A DNA stretch of 43,701 nt from Ministeria vibrans ATCC 50519 (Eukaryota > Protista > Filasterea). Positions 37,940 through 43,539 of this stretch are shown here, piece after piece. The position numbers and the translations under genes were made by a program. The DNA lies in contig CALSCP010000583.1 of NCBI GenBank assembly GCA_943704425.1, positions 1 to 43,701 on the forward strand. The letters run 5' to 3'. Below the pieces are notes generated by a model. It made no database searches. It had not been told where the DNA came from and worked only from the letters and a program-made list of their open reading frames with translations. Position 1 is the first letter of the stretch. Each line of letters opens with the position of its first letter.

Positions 37940-39847
37940 ATGCCTCTCACTAAAGCCTGTACAAGCTTTCCTGTTGCGGGAGTGGCGCGTGTCCGATGGA
38001 CAGCCGACTGCGAAATTTTGACAGTGCAACTTTTGACGGTTGACGGACGGCCGGCGTGCCTGCAGGTGAGCGCGCACGCCCCTCTCGCGACGCCGCCCTT
38101 ATCGAGTCGTTTATAGAGAAGTCGCGACGAGAACCTTGGGCGAACGCTTGACCGCCTTCTTGCCTCGTCCACACCCAAGGCAAAGAAGAGACTCAAAGGT
38201 GCGCCGGCCGCGTCTGCCGCGCCCCCAGCACCGACAGCGACGGCTTTGCTACGCCAGCCTAACGGTGAGGTGGTCTCGCGCGACACTCCCAGTTCCAAAG
38301 CATTTGTTTCGGGTCAGGCGCTTGAGGTGAGAGTTGATTACGACACACACAATGCTTTTAGTGCGTCTTTTTGCTTATGCAAACCCCCTTGTGTTGTCTT
38401 TTTTAATATTAATATTATTACGTCTTATGAAAAGATTGCGGGCTATGACGCGTATTCGGTGATTGTGAACAATCCTTTTATCACGTCGATTCAACTGCCC
38501 ACCATTGTGACGGCTACACTGCCGTTTGCGCCGTATGTGAAGACGGACTTTTGTCGCGTAGACGAGTGTCACTTTGCGTGGTTTCGCGACGACAACAAAC
38601 CACTGGGCAACTCGCCTGTCTACGTGCCCACCGTAGACGACATTGGCCATCGTGTGCGCGTAGAATGTGCACCACCAGGCGAACTGGCAGTGGTCGCCGA
38701 GAGTGTTGATGTAGTGGAGCCGTTTTGGACGCGAGCGACAATGCTGTGCGATCTGCGCGACTGGACGCCCTCTGGCCCTGTCCCGAGCAGCAGTGGCAAT
38801 GGTCTGCGTGTCATGTCGTACAACGTTCTTGCCGACACGTACGCCAGCACGGACTACGCGAGCAAAGTGCTGTATCCACACTGTGCGCCAGCATTGCTGA
38901 ATCTGTGGCGCAGACACCACCAGGTGTGCAAGGAAGTGCGTTTGTACGACCCAGATGTGGTATGCTTCCAGGAAGTTATGCTGCACCAGTTTAGCGAGTG
39001 TCTTGAGCCGCAGCTGAATGCGTGTGGATTTGATGGGCTCATGGCCTCCAAAGCGTGTCAGGTCCGTGAAGGCTGTGCGACCTTTTTTCGGCGCAGTCGC
39101 TTTGAGTTTGTGAGCAGCGAACGGGTCGCACTCAACGAAGCATTGACTGCACGTCTTGCTGTTGAGCAACAACAGAGCGGTGTGAATGACGCGTGGGCAA
39201 CCGACTTGTGCGGGCGTCTGGTGGGCCTCAACGAGCGCATGCAAAGGCTCTCGACGGTCGTTCAGCTTACGGTGTTGCGCGAGCGCACGTCGCAGCGACT
39301 GGTGTGTGTTGCCAACACGCATTTGTTTTTCCATTGGCGGGCCAGCGGCGAGCGACTCATCCAGACCAAGCTCATCTGCGAGGCACTGGAGCGACTCAAT
39401 GCACGACACGATGGTGCGCTCTCGGTGATTCTGTGTGGCGACCTAAACTCATCCGAGGAGACGGCTGCAGTGGCGCTGTTGGACACGGGCGTCGTTGCTC
39501 ACGACCATCCGTGCTGGGAAATGTTGGCACATCCACGTTCGGACGACGAACCGGTGCATGTGTCGCAGGAGGACGAGACGGCTGTACGCGAACAGCACGA
39601 GAAGGACACTGCTCATCTTGCGCCGTTTATGGGTGTCACCGTCTCCCATTCGCTCCGACTTACCAGTGCCTACAAGGATGCACCACCGCCCTACACCAAC
39701 TTTGTACCCAATTTTGTGGCGACACTTGATTGGATCTTTATTTCCGAGCGGGCCTTTCGCGTCGCTGCTGTGCTCAATGTGCCTCAGCGCGAACACATTG
39801 AGGCCCATGTGGCACTTCCCTCTGCTGTGGCGCCCTCCGATCACATC
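37940..39847 (+). CDS. PDE12: 2',5'-phosphodiesterase 12 (CCR4/EEP-family 3' exoribonuclease/deadenylase); 3' end interrupted by a gap
   Basis: PDE12-type N-terminus (RSRDENLGRTLDRL, YSVIVNNP, YVPTVDDIGHRVRVECAP). Catalytic motifs RVMSYNVLAD, CFQEV, ANTHL, CGDLNS, YTNF..F..TLDWI and PSDHI. Introns 38066-38116 and 38327-38434 (stopless, 3n). Confidence 0.92.
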
Positions 39848-39855
39848 NNNNNNNN
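39848..39855. other. Assembly gap (8 N) between the PDE12 and CysRS-like coding regions
   Basis: Run of N. Confidence 0.99.
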
Positions 39856-41946
39856 ACGGCACTCGACACCGCGCGAGATGCGAAAACTCGCGCGAGAACC
39901 GCGACTGTTCAATGCGCGAACCAAAGTGGTTGAAGAACTGCCGCAGACGCTCTCGCGCATGCTCACGAAGATGCCTGTATCCCAGGAGCCCTTGACATTC
40001 TCTCAGGCGCGCACCATGATCACGCTCGACTCCATGCTGCGCGTCTACACGGAGCACTTCCACCGCGAGTTTGCGCACGCCATTCTTCTCGTCGACGTCG
40101 ACGCGTCCTCGTCGCCCACCGACCGCCACGCTCTCACGGCCGATCCAGAGTGCTGCACACGCTTTGAGCAGGACCTCAAGCGCCTTGGCCTCCAGCGGCC
40201 TCTCCATCTGCTGCGTCTCTCGTCCATGATGAGCACCGTCACCGCCTTTGTCGAGCAGCTCGTGTCGCTCCGTCTCGCCTACCAGAACCCCACCGATCAC
40301 TCCGTTTATTTTGACGTCTCGGCGTTTCACGCACGCAGCAGTAGCATGCGCACGGCGTCGGACGTGTCGTTGCCAGCAGCAGGCGCAGCCGCTGCGTCGG
40401 AGGATGCTGTTGAGGTGTCCCTTGCAACCTGGAAGACGGACTTTTTGTTGTGGCGCACACACTTGCCCAGCGAAGTGGTCGACGGTCAATCGTTTCCCTC
40501 CATCTGGGGCATGGGGGCACCATCGAGTCTTGTGTCGCTTCCGGCCATTGCCTGTGCGGTCTTTGGTCAGCCAGACGTGCTGCACTGCGTCACTGCCGAG
40601 AGCACCCCAACCAACAATTTGACGCTGATGCATGCGTGCATTGCCCAGGCACACGCTGTTCTCGACAAGGAACGTTTTTTCTTTCTCAAAATGAGCCACA
40701 ACACGGAGACAAACAGCGAGCTGGGGGCGCGAGACGACGAAGAAGACGGGAAGGAGGAGGGAGTCGACGAGGGGGAGGAGGGAGAAACGAGAAGGCGTGT
40801 GGGCCGCATCAGCACCACCGACAGCACTAGCGAGTGCAGTCGCCTTCTCAAGCAGACATCGCTCACACAACTGCGCCTGTTTTGTCTGCTGCACCACTAC
40901 CGTCGGCCTGTCGCGCCCACCCCAGCCCGTCTTCGCGGCGTTCACCTTGCCGAGCTCGAGCTCAACACCTTCTTCATCAATGTCGCTGCGTCCATTCATC
41001 GTGGATCTGCCATCCTTGAGCGTCGTTGGGATACATCAGATTCCGCCCTCAACAGTTAGTACGTCCTCTATGCATCAATCAAACACCATTCACATTTAGT
41101 TTAATATTATTATTATTATTATTATTATTGTTATTATTATTATTATTCTTTTCAGCTTCTTCGATGTACGTCGCCAGGTCGACATTGCTCTGTGCGATGA
41201 CTTTGACTCCCCTCAGGCCATTGGGCTGCTTCTCAGACTTGCTGGTGCCACAAACATCTATATGGGCGTTGATTCGGTACTGCTTCAAACCAATTGTACT
41301 TGTTCTTCTCAATCGCGTTTGTGTCTGTTTGATCTCGTTTTAGCCTCACAAAGTGCGGATTGAGCTGCTGAAGAACATTTCGCAGTACATGTCGTCCATG
41401 CTCTATGCAATGGGTATTTCCCTCAAGACGGATATGGTATAATAATTTTAAAAACTTATTATTATTATTATTACTATTATCACTATTACTATTATTATCA
41501 TTGCCTTTGTGTGTTGGTGATTGACACTTGTTTGTATTGGTGCGTATGTCTGTCTCCCTATTTCGTATTCTCTCTCTCGTATTCTTTTTTTTCTTGCGTT
41601 TTCATTCTCTCTCATTCATTCTTTCTTTGTATGTTAGACATCAATGGACACGACAGCTGATGAGTACGGTTCTGTCATTGATACATTAGTGGACTTTCGG
41701 TGCGAACACCCCAATTAATTGTTGTTCTAGTCTTGTTTGTTTTTGCTTGTTCTCACTCCCCCATCTCTCACTCGCAGCACCCGCATCCACCAGCGTGCTG
41801 TTGCTCGAGGCAACGATGCAACGCTGCGTGCGAGTGAGCAGCTGAGCTCACAGCTGCGCGACATTGGGATTGTGCTCGAGGACCTCCCCGACGGCACGTG
41901 TGAGTGGCGCGTGCAGGGTACTGCTGCGCCTCCGCGCGACATTTGA
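39856..41946 (+). CDS. Cysteinyl-tRNA synthetase-like protein lacking catalytic motifs (putative pseudo-synthetase), with DALR and anticodon-binding-like domains
   Basis: Colinear with CysRS: RLFNARTK, QART.I.LD.MLR, FEQDLKRLG, AY...SVYFDV, DFLLWR, SIWGMG.P, IAQA.A, LRLFCLLHHYR, ALCDDFDSPQAI, LVDFR, GIVLED..G..EWR. Exons 39856-41058, 41156-41276, 41344-41436, 41638-41699 and 41778-41946 splice in frame. Confidence 0.85.
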
Positions 41947-42009
41947 TGCGTAGTGGTGTATAGATTTGTTGTACAGGAATGACTATAGTTATTATTACAT
42001 TCACTCGAG

Positions 42010-43539
42010 TTATTGCTGTTGTTGCTGTTGTGCCCTTTGCTTTGCAGCGAGTGATTGGAGGTAGGGCGACTCAGGATGAGTGCGCGTGAGAGCGGAAGGA
42101 GGGGTGACGGCTGCAGCTTGTGCTGTCGCTGAAGGGGCCGAAAAGGACGTGCGGGGAGTAGAGCGCATGCCGAAGACAGACGAGGTACGGCGCGACGAGA
42201 ACATACGCACAGTCTCTTGGAGGATGTTGAGGAGCAGCTTGACTTGTGCGCGGTCGCCGTGGCTTCCACCGCGCTCGCGGATCTGATTGGTGACCAGTCC
42301 AATGGCGGTGGCAACATGTTCGCGCTCCGTTTCGTGTACATCGCGCGCGACTGAAACGCCCACACCAATGGCCGACTGCAAGCAGCGTCCAAACGAGTCG
42401 AGTGCGTAGTAGTCAGTGTCGTCGTTGACCACAAGTGCCTTAATCGTCGCAATCAGGTCGGGGATGTTGGCGTCGGGCCAACTGGCGTACTTGGCCAGCA
42501 GCTCATCCAGGGGTGCATGGTCGAGACTCACACACTCGGTCGTCTGCACAGGCTCAGTGCGTCGACTCAGACACAGACGGGCAAGCAGAGCAACCGACAC
42601 ATTACTAAGTACTACAAGCAGATGGGCGCTGCGCGGTGTTGTGCCGGGGACCAGTGCCGTCACACACACCAAGTGCCGGTGGTGGGAGCACTGCGCGTAC
42701 AGTCGCCCACACAGTGGTGCAATCTACAATAAGGCACATAAGTGCATGGTATTGAGAGCATAATCTGTTTGTCGGTTTGTCTGTCTCTTTGTCGTACGAT
42801 GTGAAGCCAGTCTGGATCGGGAATGGACTCGAGTGCGGCGAGAACAAGACGGTCGAGATGGACAAGAACAAGCTCAAAGACACGGTCAAGAGAGAGGCGT
42901 AGTGCCATGACAATGAGATCAAGCGCAAGCGCAGTGTTGCCTGTGCGTTGTCTACAAAGAAGGAGAAAGAGAAAACACAGAGTTTGGTAATGTGTGTGTG
43001 TGAGGGGAGTGAGAGTGAAGGATGGTGGTATTCTAACTTGTTTGCTAAAATAACAGTGAGCGTGTTGAGGAGGGTGACTGTACGCGCCACATTGGGTTTG
43101 TTCTGGTCCACATAGCTTGATGTTTCCACAAGTGTGCTATCGGTGGCTCGTACCGAGCGCCATTTTAGTGACACTGAGCATTCTATTGAAAGTGAGTTAG
43201 TTTTTGTCGCTAGTTTCTTTTCATTCTCCTCTCTGTCTCAGTCTGTGTATAAATAAATATTTATAGATGTTTGTGTGTGTGTGTGTGGGTACCGTTGTAA
43301 TCCTTTTTGATCCTCGCAATGACCGACGGTTCCAGTGAGAGACCCGCCAGAGCAGTGCCGAGCATTTCTTGCGAAGGCAGCCATCGGTATGGCTGGAAGA
43401 GAAAAAGAAAAGATGTGTATGTGTGTCAAGAAGATTGTAAGGAACTGGAGAGTAAATGCGCTTACTGAGTTGGGAGTGGTGTGCACGTCGAGAAACCATC
43501 GGTGTACAGCGTCGGTGTAGACGCTCTCGGGCCGCAATA
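42010..43539 (-). CDS. SLF2/FAM178 (Nse6-related, CANIN-domain)-like protein, 3' part; 5' exons run out of the window
   Basis: LRLSLD...DW...LC..L....HHRHLVCVTALVPGTTPRSAHL..VLS, DYYAL and IRERGGSHGDRAQVKLLL resemble remembered SLF2 segments (HPHNLLWLVQLVP..T.RG..L, AYYL, IRE.....RTKVKDL). Upstream exon phases are uncertain. Confidence 0.5.

Follow-up and report, generated by a model that had tools for sequence, protein, structure and literature searches.

What can a cysteinyl-tRNA synthetase (CysRS) still do once the motifs of its chemistry are gone? This question is raised by a gene on contig CALSCP010000583.1 of the marine protist Ministeria vibrans ATCC 50519, the whole 43,701-nucleotide (nt) stretch of which is called the window here and supplies all coordinates. 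The CysRS-like gene lies on the plus strand at 39857-41946, where five exons provide 1644 coding nt, i.e., 548 codons, followed by a TGA stop (41944-41946). From the letters alone, an original prediction had described it as an intact CysRS paralogue with all of its catalytic motifs replaced and its structural motifs kept. The safest statement is that the gene encodes a transcribed CysRS-family pseudoenzyme. The reading favoured here goes further, namely that an old CysRS duplicate has been kept by selection as a binding pseudoenzyme, and we give it a probability of roughly 0.62.

Family, fold and catalytic motifs

Searches were run exon by exon. Exon 1 matched the Pfam family tRNA-synt_1e (PF01406) with E=3.3e-12 and 46.8 bits against a cut-off of 27, covering profile positions 27-212 of 301 only, and exon 2 matched DALR_2 with E=7.7e-5 and 23.6 bits against a cut-off of 22; both of the profiles by which the original prediction proposed to check the assignment were, that is, matched above cut-off. 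Exon 5 reached the Pfam family CysS_C at E=0.002 and 18.6 bits, below its cut-off of 23. A phmmer search of the PDB matched the exon 1 sequence to the solved CysRS 9yru (E=4e-8).

Structure prediction, likewise proposed as a check, points to the same family. For the exon 1 product, an AlphaFold2 model computed from an alignment of 80 sequences reached a mean predicted local distance difference test score (pLDDT) of 78 and a predicted template modelling score (pTM) of 0.79, with low-confidence loops at residues 178-187 and 288-325 and a pLDDT below 50 at residues 301-325. In a Foldseek search of the PDB, this model matched best to the CysRS of Plasmodium, Coxiella, Escherichia coli and Borrelia together with MshC (E=1e-17 to 1e-14), with class I synthetases of other types at 1e-7 or worse, and only CysRS and MshC clusters were returned from the ESM Atlas. 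Membership of the functional class is another matter. Scored against the NCBIfam cysS equivalog (TIGR00435), the exon 1 product, which was the only part scored and contains the entire catalytic domain, reached 50.2 bits against a cut-off of 340, relative to 366.1 for the canonical control P0002. The NCBIfam MshC model (TIGR03447) gave 16.2 bits against a cut-off of 485.1, and the ATP and Zn motifs of MshC are absent. By sequence and by model, the encoded protein is a true CysRS homologue that is predicted to keep the CysRS fold.

The exon 1 product was aligned to nine, then to 79, canonical CysRS, and the alignment bears out every active-site replacement that had been read from the sequence. 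Among the 99 columns that are at least 85% conserved in the 79 canonical sequences, only 37 are retained, the losses being densest in five catalytic motifs (Table 1). The ligands of the zinc and of the cysteine pocket we take, from E. coli CysRS, to be the Cys of CGPT, the Cys of GWHIEC, the His and Glu of HxGG..HHxNE, and the Trp. The lysines of KIIK and KMSK had also been described as gone, and in the alignment DDKI is deleted and KMSKS is replaced; these lysine motifs, KIIK and KMSKS, are linked to the pyridoxal phosphate (PLP)-dependent persulfide synthase activity of CARS2. The kept columns of exon 1 comprise AR..D...R after the HIGH site, D.D, F..D...L....P....R, AY, VYFD, DFxLW, S.WG.G.P, AQ..A and L...R. 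All of the structural motifs listed as retained in the original prediction (SVYFDV, DFLLW, LRLFCL..HYR, ALCDDFD and GIVLED..EWR) are present as described. The net charge and pI of pieces of the protein were uninformative.

Transcription, splicing and the assembly gap

Is such a gene expressed? The stretch is present in 20 runs from 10 studies, some of them DNA runs of the source organism, others metagenomes from algae, seawater and biofilm. The metagenome and strain runs X6 and X12-X15 contain 41-88% of its words. Four runs were mapped onto 39856-42150, specifically X8 and X9 (2025, with another organism label), X17 (2011, source organism) and the DNA run X1. Contigs of X8, X9 and X17 contain the exact joints 41276|41344, 41436|41638 and 41699|41778, and at intron 1 the RNA-like contigs pass from 41058 through four letters to 41160, which fits the repeat-masked positions 41156-41159. 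One X8 contig continues with 21 A directly after 42003, i.e., a poly(A) tail. By comparison, contigs of the DNA run X1 contain the introns and no joints. X8, X9 and X17 are treated as RNA because of these splices and the poly(A) tail, which show that the CysRS-like gene is transcribed and that its mRNA loses all four introns and receives a poly(A) tail. The open frame of about 550 amino acids (aa) over five exons with clean GT-AG borders was thereby reproduced, with transcript support from three RNA-like runs under two organism labels.

A seeming in-frame TAG at 41057-41059 is TA|G split by the intron 1 donor GTACGT, and the spliced codon is TAC. The GT at 41055 was considered as an alternative donor that would break the frame and make the gene a pseudogene; it is ruled out by the RNA-like contigs, which place the donor GTACGT at 41059. 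A short X8 contig (41029-41091), with a depth of 16 when the gene's remaining X8 contigs have 34-63, crosses from exon 1 into intron 1 and represents some intron retention or pre-mRNA. The G+C content of the introns is 21-45%, versus about 60% in the exons, and trinucleotide runs of the (ATT)n/(TTA)n type in introns 1 and 3 (41092-41159 and 41448-41510) were masked as repeats during read mapping.

The gene had been placed at 39856-41946, of which the end and the exons stood; position 39856 is merely the first base after an assembly gap of eight Ns, and the start codon lies in that gap. The exon 1 product has a 100% match to one database protein, P0001, encoded on a 1392-nt metagenome contig of the European Nucleotide Archive (L009) that reaches 162 nt upstream of 39857. 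This additional sequence is AT-rich and contains AATAAA, a stop in the CysRS frame, and then two in-frame ATGs, one at L009:154, 9 nt upstream of 39857, and the other at L009:100, 54 nt further up. The loose end of a DNA contig of the source organism (X1) has the same 30 letters as L009, ...GGGCCATGTCGACG, confirming the ATG. Inside the gap, according to the upstream sequence of L009 (1-162) and of X1 (loose end before 39857), an upstream PDE12-like gene reaches its 3' end, a short AT-rich spacer follows, and the CysRS-like gene begins with its start codon(s). The missing 162 nt were not found anywhere else in the assembly.

The first base covered by RNA-like contigs is 39857 in X9 and 39871 in X8. 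At its longest, the N-terminus, MIRVFARHAAQRIVGARAMSTRH... (also given as MIRVFARHAAQRIVGARA...), is Arg-rich, has no acidic residue until about position 29 and looks like a mitochondrial presequence, with the RNA-like contigs stopping short of that region. With a later transcription start the first AUG would be at 39878 and the presequence would be absent. Depending on the start codon, the predicted protein is about 551-569 aa long.

Three independent assemblies break at the edges of one piece of about 159 nt, namely the genome contig at 39847, L009 at its start, and X9 at its start at 39857. These shared breakpoints suggest that something local, perhaps a small repeat or a variant, splits the assembly graphs here. 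L009 opens with ATC, possibly the same ATC as that at 39845-39847. If this 3-nt overlap is real, the PDE12-like open reading frame (ORF) would end at L009:67-69 (TGA), in frame with the CysRS-like ATGs and only 30-85 nt upstream of them.

Table 1. Coordinates of the gap, exons, introns and replaced or kept motifs of the CysRS-like gene in the window.
Feature	Position	Strand	Remarks
Assembly gap, 8 N	39848..39855	.	Hides at least 159 nt; N run placed by script
Exon 1, 5' end in gap	39857..41058	+	Degenerate Rossmann catalytic domain, connective peptide (CP) insertion, start of stem-contact fold; covered by RNA-like X8, X9
WYxCGPTVYD replaced by TKM---PVSQE	just upstream of 39995	+	First Zn-ligand Cys deleted; alignment
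HIGH motif HLGH replaced by TFSQ	39995..40006	+	H50, G52 and H53 are invariant (100%) among the 79 canonical CysRS
TDVDDKII replaced by VDVDASSS	40091..40114	+	VDVD plus a 6-residue deletion removing DDKI; alignment
GRPGWHIECS replaced by GAPSSLVSLP	40514..40543	+	Cysteine-pocket Trp and one Zn-ligand Cys lost; alignment
HxGGxDLxFPHHxNE replaced by HCVTAESTPTNNLTLMHAC	40583..40639	+	Zn-ligand His and Glu lost; alignment
HxGHLxIxGxKMSKSLKNF loop replaced by acidic low-complexity insert and RISTT	40712..40831	+	Net charge of insert -8; predicted disordered
Intron 1	41059..41155	+	97 nt, GTACGT..CAG, phase 2, (ATT)n run inside
Exon 2	41156..41276	+	DALR_2 helical-bundle motif ALCDDFDSP
Intron 2	41277..41343	+	67 nt, GT..AG; exact joint in X8, X9, X17
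Exon 3	41344..41436	+	31 codons
Intron 3	41437..41637	+	201 nt, GT..AG, AT-rich trinucleotide repeats; exact joint in X8, X9, X17
Exon 4	41638..41699	+	62 nt
Intron 4	41700..41777	+	78 nt, GT..AG, phase 2; exact joint in X8, X9, X17
Exon 5, coding part including TGA stop	41778..41946	+	C-terminal anticodon-binding domain
SEQLS replacing D436..R439 motif	41833-41847	+	Alignment to E. coli and Coxiella CysRS
GIVLED, then W-R, kept	41866-41883 (GIVLED)	+	Alignment to E. coli and Coxiella CysRS
3' untranslated region to poly(A) site	41947..42003	+	57 nt after stop; overlaps 3' end of convergent downstream gene

Origin of the copy and the case for its maintenance

A search of the 29.7-Mb assembly with PF01406 returned three loci, i.e., C2292, C1564 and the window locus. 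Canonical CysRS genes had been expected elsewhere in the genome, and both C2292 and C1564 contain CGPTVY, HxGH, GWHIEC, HHxNE and KMSKS, none of which occurs at the window locus; these two are, judging from their motifs, intact canonical CysRS genes that presumably do the charging. A cytosolic-type insertion and a C-terminal extension are present in C1564 and absent from both C2292 and the window gene. Exon 2, the only exon with a clear tblastn match to the canonical loci, is 42.5% identical to C2292, and identity to C1564 is about 25% (counted by eye on the translation). In all three CysRS genes intron 1 is of phase 2 and precedes the A-[LI]-x-D motif, here ALCDDFD, by exactly ten codons. Because this position and phase are common to the three, the window gene arose by duplication, at the DNA level, of a eukaryotic CysRS that already had introns, and a retrocopy or a bacterial acquisition is ruled out by the same intron. 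The phase-2 intron before the DALR_2 motif may be an ancient CysRS intron. The catalytic domain is split by more introns in the canonical genes (C2292, 60000-69000; C1564, 48000-57999) than in the dead copy with its unbroken 1.2-kb exon 1.

Among 1.84 billion representative proteins, the best matches (E=6e-17, 32% identity) are insertion-less CysRS with N-terminal extensions, one of them, P0008 of Andalucia godoyi, carrying the annotation of a mitochondrial CysRS. In a maximum-likelihood tree the end branch of the query measures about 10 changes per site relative to a median of 0.8, or approximately 12-fold; the query joins the tree at a partial row, and the parent paralogue is not resolvable from it. 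The nuclear gene appears, from these comparisons, to be an old and very fast-evolved duplicate of an insertion-less, mitochondrial-type eukaryotic CysRS.

Has this duplicate been maintained, or is it a relic? The main rival to maintenance by selection is a transcribed relic, i.e., a duplicate without a selected role that drifts while still open and spliced, and this we consider unlikely, albeit the strongest of the alternatives. It would readily explain why every catalytic motif is gone. At about 25% identity, however, 548 neutrally evolving codons should hold many stops and frameshifts: shuffles matched in composition contained a mean of 17 stops, and none of 2000 was free of them, versus 548 open codons here. 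There is no frameshift despite the extreme divergence, and all four splice sites are intact and used. G+C at the three codon positions is gene-like (0.62/0.46/0.69, versus 0.66/0.44/0.64 in the neighbouring gene), and the motifs of the structural core have been selectively kept. Finally, over 1230 nt the window and a metagenome strain differ at two sites, both synonymous. It is because the frame is intact after extreme divergence, the codon composition is gene-like and both strain differences are synonymous that selection is invoked; this combination favours, and does not prove, that the CysRS-like gene is maintained.

Several observations weigh on the other side. No orthologue was found, the search for homologues of exon 1 returning only itself and a metagenome scan yielding no confirmed locus, although close relatives are perhaps unrepresented. 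The orthologues in related protists that the original prediction had proposed to seek were, accordingly, absent from the protein and metagenome searches. The two strain differences are far too few for a test. Relaxed constraint, and thus a relic, would also account for the long branch, the low-complexity acidic insert and the decay of the anticodon motif. Anticodon contacts of E. coli CysRS are R427, W432, D436 and R439 (PMC13449415). Here R427 is kept, whereas W432 has become L, D436 has become E and R439 has become S, in agreement with the original description of the DxxR motif as EQLS. Since R427 is the only one of the four contacts kept, specific binding of tRNA-Cys and reading of its GCA anticodon would be weakened and are doubtful. 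Intron 1 is retained in part of the X8 signal, and the resulting protein would end at the TAG at 41057, after 403 aa, which again would suit a relic. The records of X8, X9 and X17 give RNA only as a guess, and the support for the gene is at the DNA and transcript levels.

A 403-aa product identical to that of intron retention is the one called by a bacterial gene caller on L009. A further variant, 41941 A>C, occurs in the DNA run X1, which thereby has Leu (CTT) as the last residue; with the A of the window and of the RNA-like contigs the codon is ATT, for Ile. A HMMER scan of the 1.84 billion representatives returned canonical CysRS only, with none among the 150 best matches in which all five motifs were missing and none comparably degenerate, and the matches lacking some of the five motifs were mostly shorter, apparently truncated proteins.

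A second alternative is that the pocket has been remodelled for other chemistry, in the manner of MshC with its non-tRNA acceptor. The fold is common to MshC as well, and new His and Cys residues have appeared in the replaced segments (HCVTAES...MHAC). MshC, however, retains HIGH, KMSKS and the Zn site, whereas here all of the ATP-binding signatures are gone, the KMSKS loop is a disordered acidic stretch and the NCBIfam MshC score is 16 bits against the cut-off of 485; a new enzyme is therefore improbable.

Fusion to the upstream neighbour is less likely still. Here the CysRS-like sequence would be the C-terminal half of a PDE12-like::CysRS-like protein, as a single 937-aa frame can be read through the Ns, both genes lie very close together on the plus strand, and human PDE12 acts on the 3' ends of mitochondrial tRNAs. 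The 937-aa frame is an artefact, however, of an 8-nt N run that conceals at least 159 nt, and in L009 this interval is the AT-rich spacer with its AATAAA, CysRS-frame stop and two ATGs, of which X1 confirms the ATG. Furthermore, neither X8 nor X9 enters the PDE12-like gene. Lastly, an assembly artefact or contaminant, although conceivable in a draft assembly whose gaps flank the start of the gene, is scarcely credible for a sequence that recurs in several source-organism DNA runs, in metagenomes and in RNA-like runs, and that matches the other CysRS genes of the genome in intron style, composition and intron position.

Possible mode of action and comparison with known systems

If an old duplicate has indeed been kept by selection as a binding pseudoenzyme, what might it bind? 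Without the Zn site, HIGH and KMSKS, cysteinyl adenylate should not form and tRNA should not be charged, so neither cysteine activation nor aminoacylation would be possible. PLP-dependent synthesis of persulfides should be equally impossible, the lysines of the KIIK region and KMSKS having been lost. By analogy with SLIMP and HisZ, the protein would instead act by binding, most likely to a tRNA-shaped RNA or a partner protein, because the surfaces with which canonical CysRS contacts the tRNA body remain. Specifically, the kept tRNA-facing modules are DFxLW of the CP domain, LRLFCL..HYR of the stem-contact fold, the DALR_2 bundle and the C-terminal GIVLED..W hairpin. The ligand need not be tRNA-Cys, as the anticodon-reading residues have been partly changed. 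In canonical class I enzymes the site of the KMSKS loop is where the acceptor end enters the active site, and an acidic loop in its place could block nucleic acid there or mimic it.

The upstream gene (38246-39847, plus strand) encodes a PDE12-like exonuclease (Pfam Exo_endo_phos and PDE12-like_N) with its last codons lost in the gap. Its best matches are animal PDE12 proteins of 31-33% identity (bird, fish, sea urchin and crocodile), none exceeding 33%. Human PDE12 trims spurious poly(A) from mitochondrial tRNAs and acts on their 3' ends. It is tempting, if distinctly speculative and in our estimate improbable, to picture the dead CysRS as a tRNA-shape module working with the upstream PDE12-like deadenylase, and possibly with the canonical mitochondrial CysRS, to hold or mark mitochondrial tRNAs for 3'-end repair or quality control. 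Were this true, it would be a CysRS-derived counterpart of SLIMP that had arisen independently in a protist. No tRNA gene was found in the window.

Dead paralogues of aminoacyl-tRNA synthetases (aaRS) are already a known kind, and the inactive members SLIMP, HisZ, POLG2 and the HisRS-like domain of GCN2 have repeatedly proved to be regulators. The closest parallel is SLIMP, a mitochondrial-type aaRS duplicate in which aminoacylation is lost and the fold retained, with expression alongside the active enzyme (PMC9437257). The CysRS-like protein is, likewise, a dead duplicate of a mitochondrial-type aaRS expressed beside an active one. SLIMP differs in being a class II, SerRS-derived protein found throughout insects, which binds tRNA-Ser, forms a heterodimer with SerRS2 and interacts with LON, whereas the protein described here is of class I, CysRS-derived and observed in a single lineage only. 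HisZ (HisRS-like, a subunit of ATP phosphoribosyltransferase) and POLG2 (GlyRS-like) are also inactive aaRS folds reused as regulatory or accessory subunits; unlike the present case they are of class II, their partners are HisG and POLG, respectively, and their anticodon domain has been lost or repurposed differently.

Within the CysRS family, the CARS2-type mitochondrial CysRS, e.g., that of A. godoyi, has the same domain order and likewise lacks the cytosolic insertion and the C-terminal extension. Identity to it is only about 25-32%, however, and the window protein is without the Zn ligands, HIGH and KMSKS and falls below the cysS cut-off. The sole CysRS paralogues in a review of the subject are CysRS* and MshC, both of which are active and bacterial (PMC9437257). 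These two are also CysRS-derived and have the same fold; MshC keeps its ATP and Zn sites, and CysRS*, though without an anticodon domain, still aminoacylates. The CysRS-like protein, in contrast, comes from a eukaryote; its anticodon domain remains and its chemistry is gone. The original prediction knew of no eukaryotic CysRS-derived example of this kind, and in the literature searched no dead CysRS-derived paralogue, eukaryotic or otherwise, was found; the present one would be the first in the paralogue list of PMC9437257. A more distant parallel is provided by the trypanosomatid prozymes of S-adenosylmethionine decarboxylase (AdoMetDC) and deoxyhypusine synthase (DHS), which are also lineage-specific dead paralogues that exist beside an active enzyme (PMC5201418, PMC3663545). 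The prozymes activate the active paralogue by heteromerisation, whereas CysRS is typically monomeric.

The weight of the example is limited by its occurrence in a single lineage so far. Nevertheless, the split is unusually clean, with the chemistry erased and the stem-contact fold, DALR bundle and C-terminal hairpin kept, and, as the gene is already known to be transcribed, it is a tractable system in which to ask what use a class I synthetase scaffold has once its chemistry is lost.

Downstream, the 3' ends of two convergent genes overlap, the CysRS-like mRNA extending to 42003 and the ORF of the minus-strand neighbour stopping at 42010-42012. A contig of X17, maybe the transcript of this neighbour (its strand is indeterminable), extends left to 41974, and one X9 contig spans both genes.

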